Shown here: one piece after another, positions 7,864 through 63,156 of the stretch
How positions within the stretch are numbered: position 1 is the stretch's first letter
Layout: each line of letters begins with the position of its first letter
DNA from: Tubulanus polymorphus
Lineage: Eukaryota > Animalia > Nemertea
NCBI RefSeq assembly: GCF_964204645.1
Contig: NC_134030.1
Span: forward strand, 20,420,210 to 20,484,209
DNA length: 64,000 nucleotides
Reading direction: 5' to 3'
Notes under the pieces: generated by a model
What the model was told of the DNA's origin: nothing
What the model saw: the letters and a program-made list of their open reading frames with translations, nothing else
Database searches by the model: none
Program-made: the position numbers and the translations under genes

Positions 7864-8752
7864 ATGATGAATTTGTCATTGATGATCTTAGTGATTTTAC
7901 TGCTGGGGCCTGCGCTGACAAAGACAGGTAATGTTGAATTTATGAAATTATTTTAACTGTATCAATCTGTAATCTCAATGTGGGTTCGTTACATACCGTG
8001 AGCAATCTAAACACTCACTATTTGCTAGATAACTGATAAAGTTGGACCCGTGTGCCCGTTCATGTACTGTAAAATCCACTCAATCCAGATCCTAATGGAT
8101 CGAAGATTTTCGTGCGGATTATCCAAAATCCGGATTACTTGAATGGGGATTTGCATTCAAAAATATGACAAATCTTGCAGTTACGGTTGTTATTAGGACA
8201 TCGAGCTGCATATCTACATCGTGAAACGGTAAGGTTTTTAGAGGCGACTTCTCAAAATTGAATATCCGACTGGAGACAAGATGAAAAAGAATTCGAACTA
8301 ATTAAAGTGGACGCATAAGACGAAAATCCAGATAAATCCGATACGGATTAAGCGGATTTTACTGTAGTTCATTTTCAACAATGTCTCCGAAACGCATGCC
8401 AACACAATTGAAAAGCGAAAATTCATTCGCTCGTAAATCTAAAAATCTTTCAGAATTTCCTGTTTTCATCGATACTTACCCTGTAACAGTTGGACGGCCC
8501 GACATTAGATTCGAGGGGGTCGAGACACGGTACCTTTGTAGAACGATGGTTGGAAAATCGACGCCTACGTTGACGTTTCAACAGAGGAGACGAGATTCTG
8601 AATCATGGGGACCAGTTCTTGGGCATATTCGACTTCACAGATATGTTAAACAAAACGCATTTGTTTACGCGAAGTTAGAATTCAAGGCAGATTCCTAACT
8701 CCACAATGGAACGACTTTTAGATGTCGTGTAAAGGAAAATCCTACATATCCG
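7864..8752 (+). pseudogene. B1: truncated partial duplicate of the GPI-type Ig gene
   Basis: Signal exon 7864-7927 (MMNLSLMILVILLLGPALTKT, gt donor); Ig exon from 8454 has an in-frame TAA at 8696-8698 and is cut at ~8752, where the sequence restarts as a copy of ~7334 onward (tandem duplication breakpoint). Confidence 0.85.
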
Positions 8753-9289
8753 GTACTGTATGTAGTTTTAAAGGCTTTTGCAGCTAGTTTTATCCTCACG
8801 CTATCACAATTTAGAAATTTCACCAGAAGTGGAAACCGAGTTCTATTTCTGAACGGAATTGGAACCAAATTTTGACAACCATGGTCTACTCCATTATTTT
8901 GACTTGCTCCAGTTCATCGTAGAAAAATTGAAATGTCCAATAAATGCTCAGTAAGTGTTCAATAAAAAAACATATATTTCATTCATTGACACAGAAGGAA
9001 TATACGCCATAACATTGGAGAACGATTTCTGCATCCAATTTCATCAATAAGCGCGCGCAAAAGGAAAACCCGATATACATTCTGAAGGCGATTTATCTAA
9101 GTGACAAAAAGTTTTTTAATCGAAACATATTTTTATTGCCCTTATCAGATCTAAACACTAAACACCTTACCAGATTTAATAACATATCTGTTATCATATA
9201 GGGCAGAGTACTTATGTAAATACGACTGTGAAACGTACTTAATTATTTTCCGCTTGGAATTCAATCGGTGAATTTGTAATAACGTCATC

Positions 9290-11390
9290 ATGGGTTTCTC
9301 ATTGATGATCTTAGCGATTTTACTGCTGGGGCCTGCGCTGACAAATACAGGTAATGTTGAATTGATGGAATTCTTTTTAACTATAGGTATCTATCTGTAA
9401 TCCTCTGGGTTTTATCACATACCGTGAGCAATCTAAACACTCACTATTTGCTGGAGAGCAGATAAAGTTGAACCCATGTGCCCGTTTATGTACAGTAAAA
9501 TCCACTCAATCCGGATCCTAATGGATCGAAGATTTTCTTCCGAATTATCCGAAATCCGTATTACATGAATTGGGATTCAAAAGTATGACAATTCTGGAAG
9601 TTATGGTTGTTACTGGGACATTGAGCTACATATCTACATCGTGAAACGATAGGGTTTTTAGAGGCGACTTCTAAAAATTGAATATCCGACTGGAGACAAG
9701 ATGAAAAAAAATCGGACTTAATAAAGTGCATAAGACGAAAATCCAGATAAACTCGATACGGATTAAGCGGATTTTACTGTAGTTCATTTTCAGCAATGTC
9801 TCCGGTGAAGTCCTTAATGCATTGACGAAACGCATGCAAACACAATTGAAAAACGAAAACTCATTCGCTCATAACTCTAAATATCTTTCAGAATTTCATA
9901 TGTTCGTCGATACTTATCCTGTTACTGTTGGACGGCCGGACATTAGATTCGAGGGGGTCGAGACACGGTATCTTTGTAGAACGATGGTTGGAAAATCGAC
10001 GCCTACGTTGATATTTGAACAGAAGAGACGAGATTCTGAATCGTGGGGACCAGTTCTTGGAGATATGCGACTTCACAGATATGTCAAACAGAACGCACTT
10101 GTTTACGCCAAGTTACAATTCAAGGCAGATTCCAAACTTCACAATGGAACGACTTTTAGATGTCTTGCAAAGGAAAATCCTATAGATCCGGAACCTGCAC
10201 TATTTGACCCGATTGTAGTTCATAGTAAGTATCTGGGTATTCATAGCATCGATCATTTAAATATATAACTAATTTGAACTGCGCACCTTTATCTTTCCTG
10301 TGCCATATTAAATTCCCAAGTTGAGCTTTTCAAATGAAGTATGTGATGAAAAAAAGAAACAAGTCAAAATTAAGTTAATTTTTTCCCAGATAACTGGTTC
10401 AGACTAATCACGATTTCATATTCGTTAATCATAGAATTTGAGACGGATTTTTATTGAATCTAAAGAAAAGCGACTGATCTTTCATTACTTCGCTTACCTT
10501 TATATTATCTTGCCACGATCCTCAATTACCGCTTTTCTCAGTTGTATAGTTTTATCTAATTAACCATTATACAGTTAATAGCCGCCACTTTGATAAGGTT
10601 CCTTTGTCCCGTGTTGTTGTTTTTTTTCTCTAAAATGGTTTATTGTCTTGTGATAAAAGCGGTTTTTGAATATCTATCATATATTCAAGGACAGATAATT
10701 TGTTTCATGGTTGTTTTATCTCATTTTTCATTCGAGACCTCGCAACAGCTCGGTACTATAATGTATCTATAACTAGAAATGCAGAGACAAAACGACTAAC
10801 ATGTGACCCTCCAGCCAATGTTCAGAAAGAATCAAACGACAAATGGATTGTTTCGGTACTGATTGTGAACAGTATCAGAACTGATTATAGAGGGACGTGT
10901 TTGATAAATGGTAAACGCTTCATTGACATTCGCCGTCGTGATCTCGATCAATATGATGAACTATCAGGTTAGTTTCATTTATTACTAGGAATAAAATTCC
11001 CATTCGCTACGAGTATACTCGCTATATCTAACAAAATTAACAACCATTCATAGCAAAATGACTTCGATAAATGTCTGTCAGAAAAAGCTAGTCTGTGTTT
11101 GCCAACTCGTAATGTTGACATTATAATGAGATACTGATGTGGAAAGATCGTTGGTGGTTCCAGCAAAATATTTCAATCCTTATAATTTTCTATTGTCATT
11201 TTGTTTATTTTGCCTTTTATTCGAAGGGAAAAACAATGTCAATACCCATGATATCAATGCAAATGCAGTTAATGCAAATGGAACTAATGCAAATGGAGTT
11301 AATACTAACGGAGGATCTGGTAATGGAGTAAATGTTGCTGGTGGTGCATTCGGTGGACTCTTTGTATTTCTTTTGTATACTTTAATGTGA
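9290..11390 (+). CDS. B2: Ig-domain cell-surface protein, predicted GPI-anchored, ~258 aa, 4 exons
   Basis: Exons 9290-9350 (signal MGFSLMILAILLLGPALTNT), 9892-10224 (Ig; YLC...FRC), 10749(or 10737)-10967 (second Cys-pair domain), 11227-11390 (Asn/Gly linker + hydrophobic end GGAFGGLFVFLLYTLM*). All introns GT-AG and phase 1; 777 nt open. Confidence 0.8.
9493..9779. mobile_element. Tc1/mariner-type MITE in intron 1 of type B genes (copies also at ~8066-8365 and ~41276-41563)
   Basis: TIRs cagtaaaatccactcaatcc.../...ggattaagcggattttactg flanked by TA; same position in all three B copies. Confidence 0.75.
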
Positions 11391-12650: not shown

Positions 12651-13182
12651 TCAAATATCACATTTCTGTGTGAACTCACTGCCTTCTAAACTTCCATCGT
12701 CTTGTCTGCTATCCCTGGATTCCGTATCCATGGTTGTCGCTACATCTTTCTCCAATCTTGTCCCCTTCACGGCTTCCATATCCATGTAAGGAGTTGTATC
12801 TATGTCCTTCCCGGCTTCCATATCCATGTAAGGAGTTGTATCTATGCCCTTCCCGGCTTCCATATCCATGTAAGGAGTTGTATCTATGTTCTTCCCGGCT
12901 TCCATATCCATGTAAGGAGTTGTATCTATGCCCTTCGCTGTTTCCATATCCACGTAAGGAGTTATATCTTTTCCTGCTTCAAAGTTCTTGGCATTATGAA
13001 TCGGTACGCTATGTACTAATCCAGTTTCAGTATTTCTAACTGGATTTTTGTTTGAAACATTATCGGAATCACTGTCATCATCAAGCTCTTCGTAGATACT
13101 TAACATCTCGTTTGCTGTGTCATCAACTCGTTGCTGCGGTGTTGGAGTATCCACATGACCTTCACCGGACGGTCGATTACAT
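12651..13182 (-). CDS. A1 terminal exon: cytoplasmic tail (SIYEEL; YVDM + 4x YMDM)
   Basis: ORF 12651-13154 extended to a catttcag acceptor; 14-aa repeat [14 protein letters not shown]. Confidence 0.85.
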
Positions 13183-16100
13183 CTGAAATGGATAATTTAT
13201 TCTAGGATAGAATAGAAGCCAAACTTTTTACAAACTTTGATCGAAAAAGTGCATTAAGATCATATTTCGGTTGATTTGAATCCGTCATGTTATAATCAAA
13301 CATGGCCAAAGTGCTAAATTAACTCATTCATAATTATCAAACCTAGATCTTGATATCGTCCATCGCACAGGAGTTCCTTAAAATGTAGTCCCGATTTTTA
13401 CACGAATCCAAACTAGAAAACTAGGGATGTTAAAAGTAAGGTTCTTACATACCTATTGTAAAGTGAACTAGCAGAAAAAAACAACGAAGATTCCGAGAAA
13501 TCGCAAAAATATGATACGGCACAGATGTTGCGTATCTGCAAAATTGGAGCAGCGACGAACGGACGGACGGACGAACGCACGCACAAGGGTTTTTTATGGG
13601 TTATCGCTCGTCTTAACCGAGTTTAGACGTAGAACTAAAATAATGATTTGGAAATTTGCAGCTGTTATAACGGGATTCATGGTAGCGCTGTTCTTGTATT
13701 CATCAAATCTCTGGACATCTTAAAACGATGGGACTCAATGTATACGGATCTTTTCGATGGGGATAGATGGTAGATCATTACATTGGGGAATCGTGTATAA
13801 CAGAATGATTTCATACCTGCGCATGATGATTTCAGCGATTATAATGATTAAAATGCACCCAGTAACCACACTGCTGATGTACAGTATCAAACTGGTCTGG
13901 TCCGTTGTGGTCCGATCAGTTGGAGTGCGGTCAGTTTTGGTCCGATCAGTTGGGGTCCGGTCAGTTGTGGCCCGATCAGTGGTAGCCCGTTCAGTTATTT
14001 TACGATCGGTTGTGGTCTTGTTAGTTACTGTGGTGGTCTTATGAATTTTTGACCGTACAGGTGGGCTCTTGTAACGTGGACCCAGCGGAGCCTAAAAATG
14101 AACAAAACTCTGAGAATCATTACAATTTCAAAAGGTATAATAATGATTATCAATTGATTTAATTAGTCACCATTCATTCAGTTTGCTTAGGCTCATCTAT
14201 CTGTCTATCACCTTACTATATCAAAACAACAAGGGGTGAAACGGCTTCGCTTTTTCCTAGTTTAATTTGACTCTGGATCCAGTCCCACAGTTCTGTGGGT
14301 TTAATTTGAATCTGAATCCAGTTCCACAGTTGTGCGGGTTTAATTTGAATCTGAATCCAGTTCCACAGTTGTGCGGGTTTGATTTGACTCTGGATCCAGT
14401 TCCACAGTTCTGTGGGTTTAATTTGAATCTGAATCCAGTTCCACAGTTGTGCGGGTTTAATTTGACTCTGGATCCAGTTCCACAGTTGCGTGGGTTTAAT
14501 TTGACTCTGAATCCAGTTCCACAGTTGTGTGGGTTTAATTTGACTCTGGATCCAGTTCCACAGTTGTAGGGTTTAATTTGACTCTGGATCCAGTTCCACA
14601 GTTGTAGGGTTTAATTTGACTCTGGATCCAGTTCCACAGTTGTGCGGGTTTAATTTGAACCTGAATCCAGTTCCACAGTTGTGCGGGTTTGATTTGACTC
14701 TGAATCCAGTTCCACAGTTGTGCGGGTTTAATTTGAATCTGGATCCAGTTCCACAGTTCTGTGGGTTTAATTTGAATCTGAATCCAGTTCCACAGTTCTG
14801 TGGGTTTAATTTGACTCTGGATCCAGTTCCACAGTTGCGTGGGTTTAATTTGACTCTGAATCCAGTTCCACAGTTGGATGGGGTTAATCTGAATCTGCAC
14901 CCAGTTCTATAGTTGTGTGGGTTTAATTTGACTCTGGATCCAGTTCCACAGTTGTGGGGTTTAATTTGACTCTGGATCCAGTTCCACAGTTGGGTGGGGT
15001 TAATCTGAATCTGCACCCAGTTCTACAGCGGAGAGCGTTTAACACGACTCTGGATCCAGTTCTAAATTTGTCTTGGTTAAATATGACTCTTCAGCTTATA
15101 TCCAGATACTCACCGGTGCAGGGTCCAGATTAGAATGATCTGAAACAAAGTGTAACCAGCAGAATTAACTTTCAGCGTTTCTGGGTTTGATGCGACGTGT
15201 ATAGCGTTGTACAGAAGGAATAGTTACAGGTATTCCCTCGAGTTAAAAGTAACCAACAAGCAAAAATAAATAAATAACATTTCTAAAAATTCACCAGAGA
15301 TGGATCCAGCATTATTCAAGAAAAAGGTGAACTATTTATTCTAACGGAAGAATTGCGTGCACTGTAGTGCGGACAAATTTGGTGGCTACTTATTGATGGA
15401 TGTCGGTGGATTCGACACATTTTTAGCAATCTATTCAAAACACTATTTTGTCCAGGGGCTCATTATTCAAGCCGATAGACATAACTCATCACCATGAATT
15501 GCTGAATGACGTTAGTATAGATTCGCCAGTGACATAAACGGTTGTAAAAGAATAGGACTAGATAAATCAGCTGTCATTCACGAGGAAGTTCAAGGAATAC
15601 ACAATGCAACTATCATTAGCGTTTTGAATAGGTGTTATCTTATATTACCTTATCTCACCAATCAAAAATCTATTTTTGCAACAACTATCTCTCTAATTTG
15701 TTTATTTTACTTGCAAATTACATATATAATTCTAGAAGGTGGCCGACTAAACCGATGGACCAGGTGTCAAAATTTTCTATTCAAACAAGACATTAATTCA
15801 TCGGGCACATATCATCGTATTTAATAAAGTTATTATCTTGTCTTTGCTTTAACCATTTAGTCCACCATGTGCCGTTTGCCGACTACACTTTATACCAGAA
15901 TAATGTAAAATGGCAAAATTTTGACGAGCTACCCACATCCCAGCCAGTGCTTACAGATACAATTCCAACTGGCGATAAATACCCCATAGATAGATATCCC
16001 TGGTAAAAATCTTTCCAAATTCCAGATTTTTTATGGCACTTAGATAACGAGTAAATTGACAATAATTATGTTTTCCAAGAGGGTTATGTTAAGACGACTG

Positions 16101-19100: not shown

Positions 19101-22100
19101 CAGTTACGTTCTGTGGCACAATGGGTAAATCACTGGATTACTACTGGATTTTTTTTTCGTTTGGTTTTAATCCCAATATTGCAAGTCTGAGCGTCAACGT
19201 ACTCACATACGGCTAACCTGTAGAAATCACCGTACAGTCACGTACAGGTAACAACAACGTTTGAAGTATTAAGTGAGTACCATGAGTACAATAAGCCTAC
19301 CATGCCTATGTACTACAAACACAACGTTTTACCTCTCGTCCGCCCTACAGTGATGTTACTAATAACTGGTGCCATTATAACATGGATAGGATTTGGTCAG
19401 GACTAGCCTAAAGTCTAATTCAGTCTGTACTAATTCACTCGATAGGCCTATTTTTAAGACAATACAGTGAAGTATTCACACGCAGAAAGGCTAATTGATT
19501 TGAGCCATGTGATTAAATTTTACTCAGGCCTTCTCTGACCTGCTGACATTAATAGTCAAACCTAGATCCAAAACGTTCATGTGGTCACGGCTTGTATACC
19601 AGAAATCATTGTAGGCCTGTACATTTTGCTGTTCGTAGGTTTGGTATACCGATTTCTCCATTTTTGACTGATAAGTGTACAGTATAGCGTACGCATTATA
19701 TAATTGTTCCAATGGGAATAGGGCCTATTGATTGTGATACCTGGAACTAGCTCGGAATAGTCACCAAACACAAACGATATTGAAATAATTTAAAGCTTGA
19801 TTTATTGTTGAAACGAGTCAAAGAGAAAAGAGCTCAGAGAGAGAACGAGAGCCAAAGAGAAAGAGAGCGAGGAATAGAGAGACATGAATTTATATTGCTC
19901 CACTAGACAATGGCCAGACACGTCAGTAGGACAAAGTCCGAATGACCAGTGCCGAGTGAAGTGGACGGTTGGGATTAAAGAGATAAAGACAATATTGCTT
20001 TTGAAATGATTAACATACGGAAATATAGTATAACATGTTTGTAATGAAAACTGAATAATGACTTAGATATTAAATAAATACTATCCTCTGTATCATATGC
20101 CCCACCTTCACTTGATTCGTCCTCGAATCTCAAAATTAAACTATACCGACGAAAAAACTATTGACAACGAGTGAAAAACCACTACTCGATAAAAGATCCA
20201 AACATGAAAAGTAACCATATATACTGCATGATATTCTTCCCTTTAAACACGCAATTATCAGTGGGATGAAAACCTGGAAGACACTTAAATTACGCGGATG
20301 ACACTAACGACTTATCATTGTAGCAAGAAGACGTAGACACACGGAAAAAATGTATACAGGTCCACCACTCAACAATTAAGCGTAATCAGGAGAAATAAAC
20401 AAAGATAGTACATGATTCATATGAATGGAATCTAACCCATATAAAGATAGGCGTATAGGTTGTCAATAATAGTAATGTGGTCAGTACGGCAGTAAATATC
20501 ATTGTCACTTCTAAAATAAATATCAAAGTCCAATAAGTGGACTGCACGCACAAAAATAAATGAAAACTATGGCGCGATAGTAACTAAGTAAGTATCAAGT
20601 TCCACATACACGATAATAAGTATATTAAATATTTCTAATAAAAGGCGGGCTGACACAGAGGCACGCGTTTTGTAAAATAAAAAAAAACATTAGCAACAGC
20701 CGATCCTCTTTGTTCTGTGTTGGGGAGAGGACTCAGAAAACCCCAAACGGTATCAACCATACATTAGCCCTTTTTCCTTGACGAGAGTGGGTTAACTCCC
20801 GGGTTATTTCTGTGCTGGAGGAACCACTCCAGAGAAAAAGCAAAGAGTGTTAGCCAAATATAGTTATGCAAAGGCTAGCATTTGATATAGTACACAGCGC
20901 ACACTTTGTTAGTCTCCGAGACATCAGGTTTAGACATCTATGCCGGACAACAGGCTTCGATACAGGTTTGTGGACGTCTCTCCATCGGATGTTCTTGAGA
21001 CTACAGGTTTGTGGACGGTTCGACATGACGTGTGTTGTTGGTTATTCGACATTGGGCTTACCACCTATGTTGACGCAGGTGGGGCCAGCAATGTCTAGTT
21101 GTCACGTTCACATCTACAGTCCATCTCGTAGTGAGTCTGACAAAGGTCAGCTTGGTGCGATAACTTCTTTAGATAGAGTTGATGACTTCTTACGATTTTT
21201 CATCGCTGTCTCCGGTGTAAACAATGTGGAGTACCGATACGTCTGGAAGAACTTGTTTGTGGAAGAGGCCTCGTATTCGAAGACCGCATTGTGGCACTTG
21301 GCGTCTGTGGTTTTCCTCAGAGACTATTTAGGGTGTGACTTCTGACGGAGATGTGACATCGACCTGAGACTATATCGCATGCGAGTCATTTACATAGATT
21401 ATAGATCAAATTGATATATTAAACTACCTCCATGCTTTCCCATATCAGACGCGCAAATGGATGATACCGATATTAGTTAGGAAAAGATAGTTAGCTTAAC
21501 GATAGCATAAAGCAAAAAAAAAAAAAACAAAAACAAGAAAAACTTAAGCTGTTGCACCTGCAAAAGAACGTTTTGGATTAGACAAAATAAAACATTGTAG
21601 GAAGCTCTCTCATAAAATTTTGTTATAGAATTTGAAAAATATGAGTAGTTTGATAAAAGGATATCTCTGAGCTAGTGTCGCAGCAGTAATGGATATTCAC
21701 GATCTGCAAAAGACTTTTGTGAGTACGTGTAACTAATGATTATTAAGGTTTAGTGGTTGGGTAAACTTAATCAAGTGTCGGAAGTGCAATCATTTTACCA
21801 TCCGTGAATGAAAGATATAGATAAGTATCATAATAGTTAGAGTTAATAATTTTTATTAATTGGATGTACGCGCACCATGACATTCTGGTTAATTCAGGTA
21901 AGTCGTGCCGCCGAGAATTTGCTATAATTTGACTGTTTCCCCAATAGGTCGAGAGATAAGGACTTAAAAGCTTGACCTGACTTGTTTTCCTTAGACCATT
22001 GGGGGCGTGATTGATATAATAGTGATGTGGACAGTCAGGAAGATTTAAAATAGTTATATTAACGCTATCGCTGATGTTAGCCAGTGAGAGGACTAAAGAA

Positions 22101-31100: not shown

Positions 31101-31543
31101 GATTTGTCAGTCCTTGCTCTACACTTATAAAGCACATTCTCCCCTTGTTTCTTCTTGTCTGGCTGACCACTGAGATCAGGAAGCAGGTGAATAAATCGAT
31201 GGAAACCTGAAACATAGTGTCTCATTTAATCTGCATGTTATTTGAGAGATTCTCGCGGTTTCGCGTAAAAGTATAGAATATGGATTATTATAAGAACCAG
31301 AAATCGTCATGATTTGAACGTCGACATTTTTACAGCCAATTGTGAATAAATAAGTCAAAGGAAATAAGTACGTATGTAAAAGCGTTGTTTAATAGAAAGG
31401 CCATGTAACGACTTAGAAAGTTAGATGTTTTCGAGTTTGAGTAACTTACTTCTCTTTCCCTTCACTCCAGACAATTCTGCATTGTGTACGTTTCCCAGTT
31501 GCAGTAACACGATGCAGATCAGTACAGACCAGTTCCTCAACAT
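12651..31543 (-). CDS. A1: type I membrane Ig receptor with mucin stalk, ITIM-like motif and 5 tandem YxxM motifs, ~421 aa, 5 exons
   Basis: Exons 31543-31450, 31206-30868, 15139-15114, 14091-13817, 13182-12651; GT-AG introns, phases 1,1,0,2; 1266 nt open; same exon order as A2 and A3. Intron 2 is ~15.7 kb and filled with TEs. Confidence 0.75.
13817..14091 (-). CDS. A1 exon 4: Thr-rich stalk + transmembrane helix
   Basis: tttttag acceptor and gtatga donor; translates APLGPRY...(TTDR)n...[24 protein letters not shown]. Confidence 0.85.
14262..15062. repeat. Intronic 39-bp minisatellite, ~20 copies (ctctggatccagttccacagttgtgtgggtttaatttga)
   Basis: Directly visible; shorter, more degenerate arrays lie in the same intron of A2 (~36700-36945) and A3 (~60210-60510). 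Confidence 0.95.
15114..15139 (-). CDS. A1 26-nt micro-exon (DHSNLDPAP)
   Basis: tttcag/gtgagt boundaries; same 26-nt length in A2 (36653-36678) and A3 (60165-60190); converts phase 1 to phase 0 as needed. Confidence 0.8.
18165..18548 (-). repeat. Tandem ~55-60-bp units, each with a hairpin agggttttctgt...acagaaaaccct; probably an amplified end of a Helentron/HINE-like element
   Basis: About 7 units; a single copy of the same hairpin with similar following sequence lies in the opposite orientation at ~16860-16950. Confidence 0.7.
21767..22500 (-). pseudogene. C-terminal fragment of a membrane-type ORF belonging to the minus-strand LTR shell
   Basis: 224-aa ORF with two hydrophobic stretches, upstream of the minus-strand PPT; its 5' part is replaced by the plus-strand gag. 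Confidence 0.5.
22510..23965 (+). pseudogene. gag: Gypsy gag, 5'-truncated and interrupted by a TRIM
   Basis: Q-G-x-x-E-x-V...F-x-x-G-L retrotransposon gag motif; CCHC knuckle CNYCQRSGHSERTC; removing the TRIM rejoins NY-DRQQFP...QGN*. Confidence 0.85.
23120..23912 (+). mobile_element. TRIM (terminal-repeat retrotransposon in miniature)
   Basis: LTRs 23120-23313 and 23718-23912 (TG...CA; differ by one T); PBS tggtggcagcg at 23316; PPT aagttgaagggggtag; 4-bp TSD acga; ~400-bp non-coding interior. Confidence 0.92.
24349..28358 (+). pseudogene. pol: Gypsy pol (protease, RT, RNase H, integrase, chromodomain), disrupted by frameshifts and deletions
   Basis: ILIDSGS; RFCVDYRKVN; IYLDD; TDASA/VTDH/ADALSR; HHCC zinc finger and IDCVGP; C-terminal YLVQWAG...SWEP chromodomain; split over 4 ORFs; the MPFGL segment of RT is deleted near 25718. 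Confidence 0.95.
28394..28600 (+). pseudogene. 5' fragment of an env-like third ORF
   Basis: Polypyrimidine-cag acceptor just before the ATG; signal peptide MMIYPIFFILMVMGTG; then RKDYGVLF...WSHTYALPW; cut off at the antisense PBS/LTR. Confidence 0.55.
29543..30115 (+). mobile_element. Non-autonomous Helentron-associated (HINE/DINE-1-like) element
   Basis: T-run; 5' subTIR + inverted copy (agctcggctgtg...cagcggagct); (gtcc/gttc) microsatellite; three 145-bp core repeats; 3' subTIR cacagcggagct and short hairpin agccgataggct. Confidence 0.8.
30868..31206 (-). CDS. A1 exon 2: Ig domain (339 nt, phase 1-1)
   Basis: YKC...FRC cysteine pair with 61 residues between; tttcag/gtaaga boundaries. Confidence 0.85.
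31450..31543 (-). CDS. A1 exon 1: signal peptide
   Basis: [31 protein letters not shown] followed by a gtaagt donor; near-identical to A2 and A3 exon 1. Confidence 0.85.
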
Positions 31544-33264: not shown

Positions 33265-33485
<221 letters not shown>

Positions 33486-33669: not shown

Positions 33670-36600
33670 ATGTTGAGTAACTGGTCTGTACTGATCTGCA
33701 TCGTGTTACTGCAACTGGGAAACATTCACAATGCAGAATTGTCTGGAGTGAACGGAAAGAGAAGTAAGTTACTCAAACTTGAAAACATCTAATGACTTTC
33801 TTTCTTTGGTCGTTAGTTACATTTGCAAATATCTCACTGCGAACGACGAGTAGGCACTAGAGTTGATTTAAGAGAAAAAATTGTTTTATCGCGATAGAAT
33901 ACCTCATATGATGTATATATAGAAACATTACCAAATGTTTGCATAGTTTTTGATATGATAATGATATGATTTACTTTGTTGAAATAAATCTTACCAAATT
34001 AATAAGGTCATGGAAAACTTGTTTAAGATTAAATGTTAAGAACAACTTTGATGCATCGTTTAGCTTATACAAGAAAACAGAAAAAAATGAAGATAATAAT
34101 TAAAAATGAAAGGAAACACTGCATGGTACAGATCATATTATAACGGTTTTTTTCTGAAAATGCAGGCCTAAAATAGCTAAAGGCGTTTTGAATTAGTGCT
34201 AATTTAGTGATAATAAAAAAGATAAAAAAGGATTGTTGGCCATTTAAAAAAAACAATTTTTACTTTTTTTCATCTTAATCACACCACCATAATATATGTA
34301 TCTGTTTATTTATGTGATATGATTTTAGATTAATTATTAGAAAACTATACATGATACAGATCATATCATAACCTTTTTCTGGAACATGCAGGCCTATACT
34401 AACTCAAGGCGTTTTGAAATTAGTGGTAATGAAGAAATAACAAAAACGAATTGTTGGCTATTCAAAAAACACTTTTTAAATTTCTTAATCTAATCATACC
34501 ACAATAAAGAACCTAGATGTAATGAAAATCTGTTATCTGAAAATGCGGATATTTAAATCATGTAGAATTTGGGTTAAACGGCGGTGAAACTGATTTGTCA
34601 GAGCAGTTTTCATTCTACTGTTCAACGAAATGTCTCAAATAACGTGAAATCATTGGACAAACCATTATTTCCAGGTGCTCTACAGTTTATTGGCCAGCGT
34701 CCTGTTCCCGCAGGTAAGCCGAACAGGATAAACCAAGGACAAGAGGTAGAATATGTGTGTAGAACAAAACCTGGAAAGTCGGTGACAACGTTGATGTTTG
34801 AACAGAAGAGACGAGGTTCTGAATCGTGGGGACCAGTTCTCGGGGACAGGCGACTCGACAGATATGTTAAAGAGAACGTACTTGTTATCGCAAAGTTGCA
34901 ATTTAAGGCAGATTCCGAACTTCACAATGGAACGACTTTAAGATGTCTTGTAAAGGAAAATCCTACAGATCCGGAACCTGTTGAGTTTGATCCGATAGTA
35001 GTTTTCGACACCGGTAAGTAACAATTGAAATGCGTTAATCACGAACCAACCTAGAGAGGTGGTGGCTCGTCGAGATTGCGTTGCCACTCATCCAGGGGCG
35101 GATCCACAGGCTAATTTTGAATGTCTTGTCCCAAAATGGCACTTTGATGTTCAAATAGGAAATGTTAATGAGACTTCAGAAATGCACTTTCATTTTTGTT
35201 GACAAAATGAAAAAGTGCTCCAAGAAGATTTATGGACTTGTTCAAATCTCTAAAGTCCCCTTGGATCCGCTCTGTGAATAGCATAGTCAGCTAGGATGGA
35301 CTATTCATCTGCGATTTGGTTCGAGTTATAACGGCTACACGAACAGTTTCCGCGTAGGATCTGTGGCCACTTTCTATCATAAACGGAATTTACTTTGAGC
35401 TTTTATAAAATAGTGTCATTAATATCAAGGTATCTCTCGTAAACTATGATAGATAAATTGGTTAAACGGCAAAAATAGCTGTTTAGTCTTTGTTAGATTG
35501 TGTGTTCAAGTAAGGACCTAATCCATTTAACATAAAGCCATTGTATATCATCCATATTTAGCATATTTGCTTTGTCTAACAATAAAAATGGCGAATGTTA
35601 GATAGATAAATGTCATTTCGTTCTTTCAGTAAAATCATAAATTTGATTATCAGAGAAAATAAACAAACCGATTTTCCTCATTCTTCAAGTCGATGATATT
35701 TGATTCCCGTTTTGCTACGTGCATATTAAATAGAATAGAACTAAAAGCACAGTTTTAATCATCACTCGTAGTACATCACTCTATTATTTAGCCCGATTGA
35801 AATTCATCGATCAAGCAATTATTTTCAAAACGACAAGTTACCAGAGAAGCAAGACTTTGGATAAAAATGATAAGTTTGACGCTGGTCGGTAATTTTAGAA
35901 AAAGAAAACCAAATATTGCTTTTTTAGTAATAGCCTTAAAATAGAAAGTTTAAACTGTGATGGAACTATACCGCATTCGAGAGAAAAGTTGACGATTTTA
36001 GAGACCAGAGAGGCATTTCTGTGAAAGTGTAGATAGATGGAAGCGGGTCGAGCTCACTATTTGTGGGTTTTCATATCAGAGATCAACTTATCAATTAAAC
36101 CAATTCCTCTGAAGCAGTTGAGATAAGTAGAACAATATTGTATGTTTCGCATCCAATTTTGAGCTATTAGTAATTAGGAAAGCCTCTCTGATGGTCTCGA
36201 CCATATCAACAAAAAATGTTCTGAAGTTTTCAATTAATTCAGACGTATTTTCATGATCGGGCCAGTCAGTCTGAACGTGATCGTAAAGAAGGGCACTCAC
36301 TGATCTAAATAAATCTTAACCTAAACAAATCTAAACATTCGCAATGTTGTCAGAATTAATACATCAATAAATTCTGCAAATATCTCCGCTCTGCAGTATT
36401 GTAAGAATATCCAAATCTTTTGTTGCCGGTGTATGTTAGGAGTAATCTGTACAAATGATAGTGCGTTTTCGAAGAAGCGACCGGTTTTATTCTGAGTTAA
36501 TACTTGTTTCGTCTCTCTAGTTTTGCTACTTTTTGTACTTCGAGACAAATCGGTAACTTCCATATTCATAATGCTCAATTTTATACACGTCTGCAAACTA

Positions 36601-38590
36601 ATCAAACCTAAACACGCTGAAAGTTAATTCTGCTTGTAACACTTTATTTCAGATCATTCAACTTTGAATCCATCATCGGTGAGTACCTGGAGTCAAATAA
36701 AAAACACACATTTTGTAGAACTGGACCCAGAGTCAAATTAAACCCACATAACATTAGAACTGGATTCAGAGTCAATTTAAATCCACTTAACATGGAATTG
36801 AGTCCACAGTCAAATTAAACCCACACTTGATGGAAATGATCCAAAGTCAGATTAAACTGCGCAACTGTGGAATTGGGTCCAGAGTCAAATGAAATCCACA
36901 CAACTGTGGAACTGGGTCCAGAGTCAAATGAAACCTACACATCTGGGTTCGGTATCAAAAAATGCACAAGATGAGCTGAACCAAACAGAATTAATGATAA
37001 CTAAAGTCAATTGATCGTTTAAAATCGTAATAATTCTCAGATTTTTGTTTACGTTCAATAGCGTAGATACATCGATCAGACTACAGTGGGTCCCAGTAAC
37101 CGGGTCGCACCTGACCAGACCACTACTGACCGGACTACAACTGACCAGACCACTACTGACCAGACCACAACTGTTGGGACTAAAACTGACCAGATCCCAA
37201 CTGATCGGTCTACAACCGACTGGACCAATGTGATACTATACATCATCAGCGGAGTTACTGGATGCATTTTAATCATTATAATCGCTGAAATCATTATGCG
37301 CAGGTATGAAATCATTCGGTTATACAAGATTGTTCAGCGTGATGATCTAACCTTCGAAAACATAATATATGTCCCTTTTACCATCGTCTAGCTCATATCG
37401 GCGTCAAAAATTCACTGTCCAGACATTCGATTTCGCATATAAGCTTATTTCATAAGTTAGGCATTCGACAGTCATTCGATTTCTTAAATTAAATTTCATT
37501 AAATTTCCATATTATTATAAGCATTCTGGTTCCATTCGACTTTCTTGGATGCGCTACGCGAAACATAAATTATCTATTAGATGATTCCTTACTTTTGTCA
37601 TTTCTTGGAATATTATATATTCCAAGAAAATATATATCCAGAAAATCATATATTTCGATATTTTTTTTAAATTATCACACAGGAAAACGACTTTCCTAAG
37701 AAAGATGAATGATAACTATGTCCAGACATTCGACTCCCAAACAAAAGTTTTTGATTTCAGTACCGTACGACTCTGACGTCGTATCAGCGTCGTTGACGTC
37801 GAATGTCTGACATATTCCTGGACAGGGCGTGTCAGGATAGGTCCAAGACCAAATGGCACATAATGGATGTTCCGTCCTCAGAAATAACCCGATGTTGGGT
37901 TGGGGGTAGTGACTTATTTGGAGCTGACTACATCACGAATTCTAGTCACCGTTTCTTTTTAAATTCGACTTAGAGGACTCAACGACTTTAAGAATTTTTA
38001 AAACTCCGGTCCAAATGATTTCAAGATTTAGGTTTGATACTTATAAATGAGTTAACTTGGCCTGTTGGTCATGTTGGATTATCACATGACATGATTTGTA
38101 TCATCCGATAGATTATCTTAATTCACCCTTTCGATGGAAGTTCGTTAAAGTTGCTTGTTATTCTATCCTAGAATATATTACCCATTTCAGACGCAATCGA
38201 CCGTCCGGTGAAGGTCATGTGGATAATCCAACACCGCAGCAACAGGTTGATGAAACAACATGCGAGATGTTAAGTATCTACGAAGAGCTTGATGATGGCA
38301 GTGATTCCGATAATCTTTCAAACAAATATCGAGTTAGAAATGCTGAAACTGGATTACTGCATAACATTCACAAGGACTTTGAAGCCAGGAAAGATAAAAC
38401 TTCCTACATGGATATGGAAGCCGGGAAGAACATAGATACAACTCCTTACGTGGATATGGAAGCCGGGAAGGACATAGATACAACTCCCTACATGGATATG
38501 GAAGCCGTGAAGGGGACAAGATTGGAGAAAGATGTAGCGACCACCATGGATACGGAATCCAGGGATAGCAGACAAGACGATGGAAGTTGA
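33670..38590 (+). CDS. A2: type I membrane Ig receptor with mucin stalk, ITIM-like motif and 3 YxxM motifs, ~366 aa, 5 exons
   Basis: Exons 33670-33763, 34675-35013, 36653-36678, 37062-37303, 38191-38590; GT-AG introns, phases 1,1,0,2; 1101 nt open; [25 protein letters not shown] followed by RRRNR. Confidence 0.85.
35093..35274. mobile_element. Small hAT-like MITE
   Basis: Termini caggggcggatcca.../...tggatccgctctg. Confidence 0.5.
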
Positions 38591-44523: not shown

Positions 44524-45843
44524 ATGGGTTCATTGGATAGGAAGTGTTCTATCAAGTTTCCTCTGAATGAGGTAAACGGAAAAATTCTTCATCAAGATGT
44601 AATTAACGCTATAAAGGACAGTGCCGACGGTGACGTGAGTAAAATAGCAGCGATTCAAATAACGTCAAAATTTTGCATAATTACTGCAGTAGATGAAACG
44701 AGTAAAGATCTTCTGAAACAATCCGGATTAATCTTTCGAGGGAATAAAATCACTCCGGATGATGTAGATTTAACCTTTTTGTCTGTGAAAATAGTCGATG
44801 CTCCGTATGAGATGTCGGATCTGACCATTGTCAACTTTATTAAAAATTATGGTGATTATGTTGAAGGATCGGTAAAAAAAGGCGTGATAAGGGACACTCA
44901 AATATATACTGGGACCAGATATTTGAAATTGAAACAAGTCAATAAAGTTATTCCAAACTTCACATCAATCGATGGATTCCGCGTTAGAGTGTACTGTGAG
45001 GGTATAGGGTGTCAACATTGCCTTGGCGATCATCGCTCAGCTGACTGTCCGTCACGATTTAAGTGTTTCAAATGTGGCGCCGCAGAGCATAAAGCTCGTG
45101 ATTGTACCGTGACTCTGAGCGACACGATATCCAACGAAGCGCGTGACTATTGCGAGAAAACGTCAAGCGAACCGCTGTCCAATACTATTACAAATAATGT
45201 ATTAGTAATCGGTGATTCCAACCTCCGTGACTTCGAGTTTCCGAATGGCACGGTTATTTGCCAGCCTGGTGCTAGCGGTGAAAAGATTTCATCGCTTCTG
45301 AATAAAGCTGACAATCAGATTCTAGATCGATCGTCGATTACTGACGTTATTCTCCACTTAGGTACAAACGATATAAGTAACAACAAAAATGACAGTGACA
45401 CTGTAGTGGTGAATCTGTCCTTAGCCATGGCTAAAACGACGGAACATTTCAATGAAGCCCAGATTCACTTCTCTAGTATCATTCCAAGAAAAGGTAACTC
45501 CAACAACGTAAAAGAGTACAACAGCCTTGCAATAGCAGTTAACAACCATATCGGGAAACTATGCGCGGAACAGAATATCATGTTTATTGATAATGACACT
45601 ATATTGAAACTTAAACCGTCTGGTAAAGCTTTGGACCACTTTTATTCGCCGACCGATAAAAGTGGTATTCACCTCAGTGAAACCGGCAAGCTTGCATTGC
45701 TTAAACACTTTTGCGAGGCAATAGATGGCGTCACTAGTGATGCTTTCTGCACACCGACCTCGGCAAAACGAAAGGAGAGATCACTATCCGGAACACCACC
45801 TTCAATAGAAAAAACCAGGAAAAAACAATACGTTGAATATTAG
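44524..45843 (+). CDS. LINE ORF1: CCHC zinc knuckles + SGNH/GDSL esterase domain
   Basis: CQHCLGDHRSADC, CFKCGAAEHKARDC; VLVIGDSN, HLGTND, GIHLS esterase blocks. Confidence 0.9.
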   Translation: MGSLDRKCSIKFPLNEVNGKILHQDVINAIKDSADGDVSKIAAIQITSKFCIITAVDETSKDLLKQSGLIFRGNKITPDDVDLTFLSVKIVDAPYEMSDLTIVNFIKNYGDYVEGSVKKGVIRDTQIYTGTRYLKLKQVNKVIPNFTSIDGFRVRVYCEGIGCQHCLGDHRSADCPSRFKCFKCGAAEHKARDCTVTLSDTISNEARDYCEKTSSEPLSNTITNNVLVIGDSNLRDFEFPNGTVICQPGASGEKISSLLNKADNQILDRSSITDVILHLGTNDISNNKNDSDTVVVNLSLAMAKTTEHFNEAQIHFSSIIPRKGNSNNVKEYNSLAIAVNNHIGKLCAEQNIMFIDNDTILKLKPSGKALDHFYSPTDKSGIHLSETGKLALLKHFCEAIDGVTSDAFCTPTSAKRKERSLSGTPPSIEKTRKKQYVEY

Positions 45844-45868
45844 TCAAACACCATGACTTGTTATTTGT

Positions 45869-52628: not shown

Positions 52629-52648
52629 TTATTTATTTAATTAATTCA

Positions 52649-54409: not shown

Positions 54410-55290
54410 GTATGGACTGGGCCCGGTCTAATCTTACACAAGTTTCCATTTCTATATGGACAGGTCCCGGTCTAATCTTACACAAGTTTCCATGTCTATA
54501 TGGACTGGACCCGATATATATTCCTAAATGGTCTGGAGCCGATCTAATCTTACTCAAGTTTCTATTTCTATACGGACTGGGCCCAGTCTAATCTTACAAC
54601 AAAAGTTACCATTTCTATGGACTGGGCCCAAACAAATCTTACACAAGTTTCCATTTCTATGGACTGGGCCCGGTCTAATCTTAAACGTAGCAAACAAGTT
54701 TCCATTTATATGGACTTGGCCCGGTCTAATCTTACAAAAGTTTCCATTTCTATGGACTGGGCCCGGTCTAATCTTACACATGTTTCCATTTATATGGACT
54801 GGGCCCGGTCTAATCTTACATAAGTATCCATCTATATGGACTGGGCCCGGTCTAATCTTACAAAAGTTACCATTTCTATACGGACAGGGCCCGGTCTAAT
54901 CTTACACAAGTTTCCATTTCTATACGGACTGGGCCCGGTCTAATCTTACACAAGTTTCCATTTCTATACGGACTGGGCCCGGTCTAATCTTACACAAGTT
55001 TCCATTTCTATACGGACTGGGCCCGGTCTAATCTTACACAAGTTTCCATTTCTATACGGACTGGGCCCGGTCTAATCTTACACAAGTTTCCATTTCTATA
55101 CGGACTGGGCCCGGTCTAATCTTACACAAGTTTCCATTTCTATGGACTGGGCCCGGTCTAATCTTACACAAGTTTCCATGTCTATATGGACTGGACCCGA
55201 TCTAATCTTACACACAAGTTTCCATTTCTATGGACTGGGCCTGGTCTAATCTTACACATGTTATTATTTCTATAGGCTGGGCCTGGTCAT
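54410..55290. repeat. 42/44-bp minisatellite, ~20 copies (ggactgggcccggtctaatcttacacaagtttccatttctat[ac])
   Basis: Directly visible. Confidence 0.95.
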
Positions 55291-57466: not shown

Positions 57467-58765
57467 TGCGTTTCCATACTGTTTGCTGTGTACGCGTTCG
57501 AGTTATAAATCAATAGGTGCATGACGTTTCTACAACGTCATACGCACAGCAAGTGTCACTCATATGACGTTTCCAAAACGTCACACGTAGCGAAAGGGTT
57601 AACTGTTATTGAAGTTTTCCCGGGTATATGTTGATGTAGAAGTCCACTTTATTGATTTTCCAGCGTGATGACTAGAATAAAAGGAAGCACATTTCGAAAC
57701 GCAAATTATCCAGATGAGAGTTTGGTCCTGGTATCCGAAATTTAGTTAAACGACATCGGCGGTGCAGCTCCGATGAGGATGGGTTTCTCCGTCAGGGGCG
57801 CAGTAAGTCAGTGGATGGGTCGCGATCAAACGGACAGTGCTAGGAAATAACCAATACCTAGGTCAATAAATAACCTGGAGGTGATATTTTCATATCATAA
57901 ATTGTTTACTTTTATAATCGGTTTTACTAATGATCATCCAAATCTTCCTTATCAATTCCGCCAGAACGATGCGGGACCATTATATCTCACAAAGGATCAT
58001 TTTACTCAGAACCAGGTACGGCAAGGGACTGATCGGTACTAACCTGCACAGTTCTACTGAATCAAAATTTAAAATCAGAGAATGATGAGGAACTGGTCTG
58101 TACTGATCTGCATCGTGTTACTGCAACTGGGAAACGTACACAATGCAGAATTGTCTGGAGTGAAGGGAAAGAGAAGTAAGTTACTCAAACTCGAAAAGAT
58201 CTAAAAGACGTATTTTTCGTATTTTTTCGATTCTAGTTTCTTTTCTGAGTCCTCACACTCACAATTAACGCTAGGTTTCATCGACAGATTTGCAACGGGA
58301 TTGTTACCTTTACTTGCGGTCTTACAGAATTTATACAGTTAAATGCATTATAAGATGTTGAAAGTTTTACAGAGCTGATGAATAAACAGAATATAGTCAT
58401 TATGTCATAAGGAAAGTTTTGAGGCGATAGTTAGCTTCTACAAGAATGCCTTAGAAGAGAAAGAAAATATGAAAGATAAAATCTGAAAAAGAAAGGAAAG
58501 AACGACGTGACACCTATCATATGACGTTTTTCTGACAATGAAGTATTTGCGTTCCTTATCTATCTAATTATTCTTCCGCGATGAATTTATTTCAACTGTC
58601 CCTGGAGATTTTGAATGGTTTAACCTAGAAGACTGTCAAGCTGATTTTTAGAATGATTTTCATTCTTCACGATAGGTAAAACACAATATCCGTGTTGACG
58701 CGATGAGGAGAGAATCCCACAATGATAATAAAAAGTCCGAAAATGAAACTTCGAGATAGTAGTTT

Positions 58766-59273: not shown

Positions 59274-62200
59274 TTAAATCTCGTTGATGCGCAATGTAAA
59301 CATTACTTGGAAATGTATAGAGAATCCCACACTAATAAAACGAAAAGACGAATGTTTGAAAAGTTTCCTTCGAGCTGATTTATTGATGCGACGTTTCGTC
59401 TATAACCTAATAACCATCTTCATATAGCCATATCGTTACAACACGGAATAGTGCGTCACCTGCGGTTCTCATTTCATCTTCATTATTCATACGTGTATTT
59501 AATACGTTTCAGCATTACCCAGGTACATTGATGTTGTATCTGAAATCAGTGGACAGCCCGACAAGAAAAAACAAGGGCAGACGATGTTTATTCTTGTAGA
59601 ACACAGGGGTCTGGATCGACCGTACCTACGTTGACGTTTGAACAGAAGAGACGCGGTTCGGATTCGTGGGGACCAGTTCTTGGTGGCATACGACCTACAG
59701 TTGTCAAACGGAACGGACTTGTTTACGCTAAGTTAGAATTCAAGGCCGATTCCAAACTTCACAATGGAACGGTTTTTAGATGTCTTGTCAAGGAAAATCC
59801 TATAGATCCTGAACCTGTTGAGTTTGATCCGATTGAAGTTCTTGGTATCGGTAAGTACCGATCAAAATGCGCAAATGTAGGTAAAAATTCCATATGATAA
59901 AAATTCCAATGGTGAACAAAAACACGCAAAAAATTTACAACAAAATTTGGCAATGCTACGTTGATTATATGGACAACTTTGATTATTTGATTTCACAATG
60001 TCTGTAACTGTATTACCCTATAAACTCCCCATGAGTGTTTTTGAGAGAGTTAATTTATCCATCATATCCTCTGTAAGATGAAATATAACATTTTCTACAT
60101 GTCAACAAACTTATCAAACCAAAACACGCTGAAAGTTAATTCTGCTGGTTACACTTTGTTTCAGATTATTCAACTTTGAACCCCTCATCGGTGAGTATCT
60201 AGATATAAGCCTGAGTCAAATTATAACCACATAACTGTGGAACTGTGTCCACTGTCAAAATTAAACCCACACACTGTGGAACTAGATCCTAAGTCAGACA
60301 TAACTGTAAGACTGGAGTCACAGATTCATATTAAACCGACACAACTGTGGGACTGGATCCAGAGTAATTAAACCAACACAACTGTGGAACTGGATCCACA
60401 GTCAAACAAATCCCACACAACTGTGGAACTGAATTCAGAGTCAAATTAAAGTCCACACTGTGGAACTGGGTTCAGAGACATATTAAACCCACACAACTGT
60501 GGATCTGAGTTCGGTATCGAATAATGCACAATAGTTGTTCTTACTCAAACTGAATTAATGATTAGTAAAGTCAATTTAAAATCGTAATAATTCTCAGATT
60601 TTTGTTCATGTTTAGATGAAATACATCAATCCGACTACATTGAGTCCCAGTTATTGGGTTGCACCTGAACAGACCACTACTGATCGGACCACAACTGATC
60701 AGACTCGAACTGATCGGCCTACAACTGATCGATCTACAACTGATCGACCTACAACTGATAAGACTGCAACTGACCAGACCACAGCTGATCGGACCACAAC
60801 TGACCGGGCCCCATCTGATCGGAACACAACTGACCGGACCAATGTAATACTGTACATCACCAGCGGAGTTACTGGGTGCATTTTAATCATTATAATCGCT
60901 GAATTCATCATGCGCAGGTATGCAATCATTCTGTTATACAAGATTCCCCAGTGTGATGATCTATCACTTTTCACTCTCCAAATCTTGTCGTTATCCATTG
61001 AGTCCCATTTACCATCGTCTTAAGATGTCCAGAGATTTGATACATAATGTACTTGTGCTAACGCGCATCCCCTTAATATGACATACAATTAGCAGTAATT
61101 TCATACAGCAATGTAAATTTCCAAAAACGTCTTAACTCATTTTGGTTCTAACAATGTAAGAGCAGTCTTAACCTATGAATTGGTGAAAGCATCAAACCTA
61201 CCTGTTTCGATTACTTACTGCCTCCATCTTAATTGAGGGTTTCTTCCAAATCATGGCTTAGAAATCTAGTGCCTGGGATGTGTGATAAGTTATATCTTCG
61301 ATGATGGATTATGAAACTACTATTTTTGACGTTGTTTTTTTTCAATGACAAATTATGAATATCTATGTTAAAACTATGTCGTGATACTAAAATCCTTATA
61401 TGATCCTTTATTGAGTATAATATGATCTAAGCTACAATGATCCTGTATCCTGATCCTGCGAATCATCGTCCAATATAATATTTACGTCTACGTATGATTT
61501 TTATTTGAATTTCTTGGATGAAGAAATTACTTTCAAACGATTTTGCTATAGGGCCTATAATTTATGAAATGAATCTACCCAAGATCGGCACGATCGAAAT
61601 CTAGATGGCCGACTGGAGGCCAGTATTTTTCAGCAAAATCAACTTTTGCATACTTTTTGAGTTTTCAAAGACGCTTTGATCAGGAAACAAGATGGTTTGT
61701 CATGAAATCAAAATTTGAAATGGGTTTGGGTTGAAGTATCTAGCATCAAATATTTATCTATCAACAGGTTTTAACTAAATTGTTGAAATTTGATAATTGT
61801 TAGCATTCATTGCACACATTCCCTCATGGGGAATTAGGTTCTTACCACCAACGGAGTTAAATAACTCTACACATTTTGTTATCACAAGCAATAGCAACGT
61901 TTTCTATTATTGCTGCTTCACGCGTAGGCCTACGCTCACCAAGAGGCGTTTAAATTGTCGAGTAACATATAATTTTCCATGATTGCGATTGGTATTTGAA
62001 TTTCGTAACTGCATTTAATTGGACTGCTGTAGTTTTTTGCATAATGATTGTGGTGACTTTCAAACAATTGGTTTTTGTATGTGTTGTTGACCAGGGGGCT
62101 TTATATGATCAAGCAGGAGACGAGTGTCGTTACTATAATCTGTAAACTGGAAAGATGCCAGACTAAGGATGAGAGATGAGCGACCTACGAACTATTGTTG

Positions 62201-62840
62201 AATTGTTTGGTTTAGCTATTGCGCAATATTGCTCTAACTTGGAATCGTAAACAAGATGCGGGCCTAAATTATTTCAAAAACTACATTAGCGACGATATCA
62301 AGATCTAGGTTTCACTTATTAAGAGTTAATTTGGCCATGTTGAATTATAACATGATATATCTGCATCGAAATATGATCTCAGTTCACTTTTCGGTGGAAT
62401 ATTCTATCCCGAATGAATTACCCATTTCAGATGCAATCGACCGTCCGGTGAAGGTCATGTGGATACTCCAACACCACAGCAACAGGTTGATGATACAACA
62501 TGCGAGATGTTAAGTATCTACGAAGAGCTTGATGATGACAGTGATTCCGATAATGTTTCAAATCCAGTCAGAAATATTAAAACTGGATTATTACATAACA
62601 TACCAATTCACAAGGACATCGAAGCCGGGGCAGATACAACTGCATATATGGATATGGAAGCCGCGAAGGGCATAAATACAACTCCTTATATGGATATGGA
62701 AGCCGCGAAGGGCATAGATACAACTCCTTACATGGATATGGAAGCCGTGAAGGGCATAGATACAACTCCTTACATGAATATGGAAGCCGCGAAGGGTATA
62801 GATACAACTCCTTACATTGATATGGAAGCCGAGAAGAAAG

Positions 62841-63156
62841 AATAACTGTAAGAGTAAAACAAGAATCAAAAAACAGAATCATAACCAAATTATACTGCCC
62901 ACTCTCCTCCTCTATTCAAAAAGTTAAACATTCTCAAAATAAACATTCTCAAAATAGACATTCTCATATAAAAACCACCCTATTCATCCATCAAATTCTA
63001 CTATCATTACCACATTATGTTTAAAAACATGTTCGCCATTGAAAACCACTATCGAAACATACAAAAACATTCTCAACATGATCACACACATTGTCTACCT
63101 GTAAACCATTATTACGTTATGCTTTTCTTTGAAATAAATTGAAATTGAAATTGAAA
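62841..63156 (+). mobile_element. 5'-truncated LINE 3' end inserted in the A3 terminal exon
   Basis: Encodes NYTAHSPPLFKKLNILKI (compare HTDPIFKKLNILKF in ORF2 of the intact LINE); ends aataa(attgaa)3; A-type tail homology resumes at ~63157. Confidence 0.8.

Follow-up and report, generated by a model that had tools for sequence, protein, structure and literature searches.

Clustered immunoglobulin-type surface receptors with tyrosine-motif and tail-less members in the nemertean Tubulanus polymorphus

The locus described here lies in a window of 64,000 nucleotides from the nemertean Tubulanus polymorphus (contig C6:20420210-20484209), which was analysed together with 20 kb of left-hand and 50 kb of right-hand flank. 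It holds members of an expressed multigene family of single-pass surface receptors of the immunoglobulin superfamily (IgSF), a family so far seen only in Tubulanus. Exons were defined by combining a six-frame motif search with open reading frames, DNA alignment and splice-site scans. Both conserved amino acid strings from which a first-pass annotation had proposed six related immunoglobulin (Ig) exons were recovered at six places (c1 to c6), and the alignments and splice sites agree with that proposal, the exons being homologous, 333-339 nt long, in phase 1-1 and bounded by a T(T/C)CAG acceptor and a GTAAG donor. Splice joints and splice-site scans indicate that the Ig domain is encoded by this one exon. 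Intact and dead copies are mixed, as had been noticed earlier, with c2, c3 and c4 intact and c1, c5 and c6 broken. Comparison of the window with itself reveals a large duplication in inverted orientation, in which 4.6-15.2 kb corresponds to 43.4-36.6 kb, as well as direct similarity of 36.6-38.5 kb to 60.1-62.8 kb. The coordinates are collected in Table 1.

Genes of type A encode a signal peptide, an Ig domain, a 26-nt micro-exon, a Thr-rich stalk which is probably O-glycosylated, a transmembrane (TM) segment and a cytoplasmic tail with tyrosine motifs. A1 corresponds to RefSeq LOC141906754 (P0098, 421 aa, full length), whose gene crosses a 15.7-kb intron, and A2 to LOC141906755 (P0015, a 5'-truncated model). 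The model for A3, LOC141907547 (P0100), begins with the stalk exon, downstream of the broken Ig exon, and so has no Ig domain. All three proteins are named "uncharacterized protein", and the RefSeq proteins agree exon by exon with the gene models of both types. A2 is spliced as modelled, since contigs of run X2 are exon-only and contain its GT..AG joints (35013>36653, 36678>37062 and 37303>38191), with spliced contigs at depths of 50-760. In one X2 contig with these joints, the 92 letters 5' of position 34881 are unmatched, and that position has no AG acceptor; the contig may be a chimeric contig or represent an unannotated 5' end of A2. The corresponding introns of A1, A2 and A3 contain a 39-bp minisatellite (14260-15090, 36718-36941 and 60311-60507, with 21, 6 and 5 copies). 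This repeat was considered as coding stalk sequence and rejected, as the A2 splice joints place the array inside the intron 36679-37061. In each of the three runs it is covered by contigs with depths in the thousands, and it is therefore a dispersed repeat.

In genes of type B the signal peptide is followed by an Ig domain related to that of type A, a small second domain of Ig-like character (dom2) and a hydrophobic end that resembles a glycosylphosphatidylinositol (GPI) signal; all exons are in phase 1. The RefSeq B locus (LOC141906756) has three isoforms (P0003, P0085 and P0086), again under the name "uncharacterized protein". In these models the signal exon comes from either the c1 or the c2 side and the Ig exon always from c2, position 7927 being spliced directly to 9892; c1 and c2 thus form a single gene, whose transcripts can start with the signal exon of c1 as an alternative first exon and skip the Ig exon of c1, a pseudo-exon. 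The protein ends in ...NGGSGNGVNVAGGAFGGLFVFLLYTLM before the stop, a hydrophobic stretch which follows the spacer and, judged by eye, fits the GPI-signal pattern, and from its sequence B looks like a GPI-anchored protein. Where Ig and dom2 meet (10720-10737), isoforms X1 and X3 are longer by four residues (IFIR), for which the needed acceptor has no preceding AG. The broken B copy (LOC141906757) is represented in RefSeq by a truncated "uncharacterized protein" (P0019). The two spliced architectures foreseen in the first-pass annotation are therefore recovered, by the A2 contigs of run X2 together with P0015, by P0098 for A1 and by P0003, P0085 and P0086 for B; what that description lacked was the micro-exon of the A genes.

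The convergent A/B arrangement occurs four times over about 100 kb. The tail-to-tail orientation proposed before, with stops 1.0-1.3 kb apart, holds for the two pairs that were measured, and four pairs exist in all.

Table 1. Exons, gene copies and convergent pairs of the receptor cluster (window coordinates).
Feature	Coordinates	Strand	Description
c1	8454-8757	+	Dead pseudo-exon of Ig type with a TAA stop and a replaced 3' end; B transcripts skip it
c2	9892-10224	+	Intact B-type Ig exon, phase 1-1
c3	31206-30868	-	Intact A1 Ig exon, phase 1-1
c4	34675-35013	+	Intact A2 Ig exon, phase 1-1; domain used for folding
c5	about 41164-40831	-	Ig exon of broken B copy; stop and frameshift
c6	59513-59850	+	A3 Ig exon; 1-bp deletion leading to a frameshift
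B alternative first exon 1	7825..7927	+	Signal peptide MMNLSLMILVILLLGPALTKT; phase 1 end, GTAATG donor; isoforms X1/X2 map at 100%
B alternative first exon 2	9290..9350	+	Signal peptide MGFSLMILAILLLGPALTNT; isoform X3 (P0085)
B second-domain exon (dom2)	10737..10967	+	Phase 1-1; two invariant Cys and one Trp; small Ig-like beta-sandwich (weakly indicated by modelling)
B C-terminal exon	11227..11390	+	Gly/Asn/Ser-rich spacer, then AGGAFGGLFVFLLYTLM and stop; no cytoplasmic tail
Broken B copy LOC141906757	39609..41985	-	Signal exon 41985-41926; c5; dom2 40310-40080; C-terminal exon with stop lost
A1 tail exon	12651..13182	-	SIYEEL and five 14-aa repeats (YVDM, then 4 x YMDM); 42-bp minisatellite 12763-12969
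A1 stalk/TM exon	13814..14091	-	Thr-rich stalk and TM segment
A1 micro-exon	15114..15139	-	26 nt, DHSNLDPAP
A1 signal-peptide exon	31447..31543	-	Head-to-head with A2 over a 2.1-kb divergent promoter region
A2 signal-peptide exon	33670..33766	+	Phase 1 donor GTAAGT; outside RefSeq model P0015
A2 micro-exon	36653..36678	+	26 nt, DHSTLNPSS; GT..AG joints in run X2 and P0015
A2 stalk/TM exon	37062..37303	+	DQTTT repeats and TM segment
A2 tail exon	38191..38590	+	SIYEEL, then YMDM, YVDM, YMDM
A3 signal-peptide exon	58082..58178	+	Signal peptide
A3 micro-exon, stalk/TM and tail exons	60165-60190, about 60616-60917, 62431-62845	+	Tail: SIYEEL, 3 x YMDM, YMNM, YIDM
Pair B + A1	Stops 11390 / 12651		About 1.26 kb apart
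Pair A2 + broken B	Stops 38590 / about 39609		About 1.0 kb apart
Pair A3 + B			B just outside the window (flank extension)
Pair A4 + B5			27-37 kb further on

The Ig fold of the exon-encoded domain, which the first-pass annotation had read from motifs, was examined by structure prediction and is borne out. The Ig domain of A2, folded by AlphaFold2 (AF2) with an alignment of 19 paralogous exons, gave a model with a mean predicted local distance difference test score (pLDDT) of 86.8 and a predicted template modelling score of 0.79. A Foldseek search with this model returned 71 matches in the Protein Data Bank (PDB) at E<=1e-3, all of them Ig domains (TM-score 0.45-0.67), including MyBP-C C1, SYG-1 D1, shark VNAR, CD22, CD79b and BTLA. 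The predicted two-sheet Greek-key beta-sandwich is thus taken as real. Cys28 and Cys90 are invariant in the 19 paralogues and spaced 62 residues apart, within the IgSF range of about 55-75. At the sequence level, a profile of the family matches multi-Ig proteins, such as hemicentin-like ones, at E 1e-24 to 1e-4, and weak C2-set_2/Ig_3 Pfam matches cover the family Ig domain in P0011; a PDB sequence search with the Ig exons gave matches at E>0.3 only. For dom2 the AF2 model has a pLDDT of 74.9 and the best Foldseek match an E of about 0.1, while the best structural match, a filamin repeat, has a VIA-align Z of 7.8, in the range that the tool calls common. Dom2 is therefore described here as a probable Ig-like sandwich, without assignment to a class.

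The tails of A1 to A4 share an invariant SIYEEL motif and a series of 14-residue repeats of the form DTTPY[MVI][DN]M, encoded by a 42-bp minisatellite. YxxM is the motif recognised by the SH2 domains of class IA phosphoinositide 3-kinase (PI3K), and YMDM is the p85 site of PDGFR-beta (Y740). The repeats number five in A1, A3 and A4, three in A2 and 12 or more in paralogues, so that the number of PI3K docking sites in the A tail would be set by a minisatellite. A homologue of the inter-SH2 region of p85 is present in the T. polymorphus genome. SIYEEL fits both the pattern of the immunoreceptor tyrosine-based inhibitory motif (ITIM) and the Src-type pYEE(I/L) pattern.

At least 65 Ig exons of this kind are present in the genome, along with 29 dom2 exons and about 35 tail loci, and most lie on C9 or in the 17.5-22.8 Mb part of C6. 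In ten tandem units at C6:21752000-22093000, each about 36 kb long, an A-like gene precedes an Ig+dom2 gene; within a unit the YxxM tail lies 2.2 kb from the Ig exon, and the Ig+dom2 gene 7-8 kb later on the same strand. Genes of type A and of the dom2 type are therefore neighbours there too. A profile search of 1.84 billion proteins, combined with a word-based search, gave 15 strong matches, all of them T. polymorphus proteins, with generic multi-Ig proteins next; one of the weaker matches that were checked is a hemicentin-like protein of this generic kind. The suggestion that the family is lineage-specific is accordingly upheld. A literature search found no published description of the family; a review that touches on nemerteans (PMC2248247) was among its results.

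Some relatives elsewhere in the genome have other cytoplasmic parts. P0012 and P0002 are predicted type I proteins in which the family Ig domain and dom2 form the membrane-proximal part of the ectodomain, followed by a TM segment and a cytoplasmic NACHT domain; in P0012 (1486 aa) the TM segment lies at 455-473 and NACHT at 669-821. In these predicted proteins, from about 18.35 Mb on C6 (L050) and LOC141906641/906642, the order is N-terminal Ig, family Ig, dom2, TM segment, NACHT and NLRC4_HD2. P0010 (LOC141906794, L047, at about 21.947 Mb) has an ectodomain and TM segment 80% identical to those of P0012 (residues 1-476), the cytoplasmic regions being unrelated. With P0010 and P0012 alike outside and unlike inside, one ectodomain is therefore wired to different outputs. 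A membrane receptor with an Ig-TM-NACHT layout, AjNLRC4, has been described in the sea cucumber Apostichopus japonicus (PMC8699970).

The Ig exon is the fast-evolving part of the genes, diverging far faster than the signal and tail exons. Between A paralogues the nonsynonymous rate (dN) of the Ig exon is 0.20-0.30 and the synonymous rate (dS) 0.43-0.53, against a dS of 0-0.10 in the signal exon and, at the start of the tail, a dS of 0.07-0.23 with a dN of 0.03-0.10 (dN overall 0.01-0.10). The variation over the 19 paralogues is located in strands A, A', B, C'/D and E and in the BC and DE loops; strands C, F and G and the EF turn, with an NG(T/S) sequon, are nearly fixed. The two parts of the exon also differ in their history. 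In the 5' third, A and B copies have a p-distance of 0.46-0.51 and all B copies form one clade (100/99 support). In the 3' two-thirds, the p-distance is 0.12-0.21 for every pair type, the same between A and B as within a type, and no sampled bootstrap tree unites the B copies in one clade; forcing monophyly of the types costs 17 log-likelihood units, with a p of 0.053-0.055 in the approximately unbiased test. Exchange between A and B Ig exons in the 3' part is thus probable from the sequence comparison, and the cluster offers a tidy case of exon-level mosaic evolution among receptor genes.

The cluster could also be a decaying set of duplicates with no present function, in which transcripts would be noise and conservation would reflect recent duplication: three of the six Ig exons are broken, transposable elements fill the introns and spacers, and the signal and tail exons differ by a few percent only. 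This is nonetheless highly improbable, given that intact copies have kept frames and splice sites open over five exons despite an Ig dS of about 0.5, that invariant residues are retained over paralogues just 42-50% identical, and that spliced contigs occur at the depths given above.

Allelic variation was compared in A2 alone, with one other haplotype (run X1). Its Ig exon differs by 2.7%, a value that the introns also show; there are six synonymous changes, and two codons are altered. The first-pass annotation had raised the prospect of an allorecognition locus, and a histocompatibility or gamete-recognition locus with polymorphic, matched A and B alleles, like Hydractinia Alr or Botryllus fuhc/fester, would share with the Alr complex the birth-and-death turnover, the Ig domain missed by Pfam and the tails with tyrosine motifs. 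Xenograft rejection is also known from the nemertean Lineus. The equal divergence of Ig exon and introns in this one haplotype, which is not hyperpolymorphism, speaks against allorecognition-type polymorphism, and Tubulanus is solitary, not colonial; allorecognition is very unlikely on these grounds.

The reading preferred here is that these are immune-type receptors, involved in innate immune or other non-self recognition, which signal through YxxM and PI3K and have B as co-receptor or decoy; we assign it a probability of roughly 0.55. An immune-type role with PI3K signalling is plausible, and we infer this setting as the most likely one, indirect support for an immune-type role being provided by the fast-diverging Ig exon and the NACHT-bearing relatives. 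In the proposed sequence of events, A would bind an extracellular ligand via its Ig domain and then cluster, Src-type kinases would phosphorylate the tail tyrosines, and the YxxM array would recruit the SH2 domains of the regulatory subunit of class IA PI3K, while SIYEEL could recruit an SH2 domain of the Src-family or SHP type. The outcome would be uptake or activation of the cell. As a raft-anchored co-receptor or decoy, the tail-less B would probably sample the ligand of A or one related to it. B is no partner of the classical paired-receptor kind (KIR, SIRP, CD300, PILR), which has a short tail and a charged TM residue for an ITAM adaptor, as B has neither a TM segment nor a tail. The first-pass proposal of B as ligand, co-receptor or decoy for A has gained no support; complex prediction for the Ig domains of A2 and B2 gave scores of 0.30 and 0.27, below the mark of 0.34, which counts neither way.

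Several points weigh against the immune-type reading. The canonical Trp of the C strand is absent, the TL(M/I)F(E/Q)Q strand having Phe or Tyr in its place and the invariant Trp51 sitting in the C-C' loop, and Pfam Ig models gave no match on the separate exons, even at E 10. The dN/dS of the whole Ig exon is 0.46-0.76, and no positive selection is claimed because these values are below 1; dN exceeds dS only in a 14-codon C'-E stretch, on 0-1 synonymous changes per pair. For B, the GPI signal was assessed by eye and the support for expression comes from RefSeq models; for A2, the run types are unrecorded, with X2 taken as RNA from its joints and exon-only coverage. Adhesion and neuronal wiring are also functions of expanded, clustered IgSF genes, and the main competing explanation is of this kind. 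The proteins could serve in cell adhesion or wiring as IgLON, Dpr/DIP, SYG and ZIG proteins do; a GPI-anchored B would then bind the transmembrane A in trans or in cis, and the YxxM tail would link adhesion to PI3K and the cytoskeleton. In its favour, the structural matches include SYG-1/Rst D1 and ZIG-8, proteins with two Ig domains and a GPI anchor are typically adhesion molecules, the A and B genes always lie side by side, and the conserved C/F/G sheet could be a fixed Ig-Ig interface. Against it stand the copy number of at least 65, the frequency of pseudogenes and the rapid divergence of the Ig exon, a combination unusual for wiring molecules, and the NACHT domains of the relatives. We consider an adhesive role doubtful and keep the immune-type reading as the working one.

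Clustered, lineage-specific IgSF families with signalling and non-signalling members are already known, so the surprise is moderate, and the Tubulanus family can be set beside several of them. It resembles the vertebrate CEACAM family in having an N-terminal Ig domain on one phase 1-1 exon, members with a TM segment and tyrosine motifs (as in the ITIM-bearing CEACAM1) next to GPI-type members (as in CEACAM5/6/8), birth-and-death turnover and signs of Ig-exon exchange. It differs from CEACAM in lacking a detectable sequence relationship, in the YxxM array that replaces a pair of ITIM and immunoreceptor tyrosine-based switch motifs (ITSM) in the A tail, in the family-specific second domain of B and in the strictly convergent pairs. 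A can also be compared with the YxxM-bearing immune receptors (the CD28/ICOS co-stimulators, DAP10 and CD19) and with the YMDM at Y740 of PDGFR-beta: its single Ig domain sits on a stalk, and the TM segment leads to a tail with Y-x-x-M as key motif, in which YMNM and YMDM occur literally. It differs from them in that its tail has 3-5 tandem copies (12 or more in paralogues) from a 42-bp minisatellite, and neither an MYPPPY-type loop nor sequence homology is seen. With Hydractinia Alr it shares lineage specificity, an Ig fold seen only by structure prediction, a large cluster that includes pseudogenes, and tails with tyrosine motifs; it differs in showing no sign of allelic hypervariability, in its one-Ig ectodomain, in the GPI-type partners and in belonging to a worm that is not colonial. 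Descent from CEACAM, CD28 or Alr finds no backing in sequence homology, the 15 strong matches being all from T. polymorphus. P0012 and P0002 repeat the order of AjNLRC4, with a signal peptide, an Ig-like domain, an Ig domain at about 250-350, a TM segment at about 455-475 and NACHT, although their genes lie outside the window and the A and B genes within it are without NACHT. No Apostichopus protein was identified among the matches whose source was checked, most of the weaker matches being unchecked.

A broader scheme can be offered tentatively, and we would not call it likely. One nemertean-specific Ig ectodomain may have been exon-shuffled to at least four outputs (the tunable YxxM array, the GPI anchor, the NACHT NTPase and an unrecognised cytoplasmic region). 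Genes of type A would stay beside dom2-type partners, as in the four convergent pairs here and the ten tandem pairs at 21.75-22.09 Mb, because the two proteins would act as one receptor complex through the conserved C/F/G faces, the variable A/B/E/D faces reading non-self. If true, it would amount to a self-contained surface immune-receptor system in a phylum with almost unstudied immunity. To our knowledge, the molecules of nemertean immunity are almost unknown, and the locus is a concrete candidate receptor system open to testing. It also adds another case, beside Hydractinia Alr, of an Ig domain missed by Pfam and found by structure prediction.

The window contains further repeats and transposons. 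A Ty3/gypsy-like long terminal repeat (LTR) retrotransposon (19735-28974), with protease, reverse transcriptase-RNase H, integrase and chromodomain, lies antisense to A1 inside its long intron, its 361-bp LTRs being 99.2% identical. A long interspersed nuclear element (44524-48793) lies between the broken B copy and A3; its first open reading frame has a zinc knuckle and a GDSL esterase and its second an endonuclease and a reverse transcriptase. An (AT)108 run occupies 33267-33482, in the divergent A1/A2 promoter region, and a 44-bp tandem array of about 20 copies is found at 54411-55288. The window starts with a GC-rich 20-bp satellite of 82 copies (1-1631).

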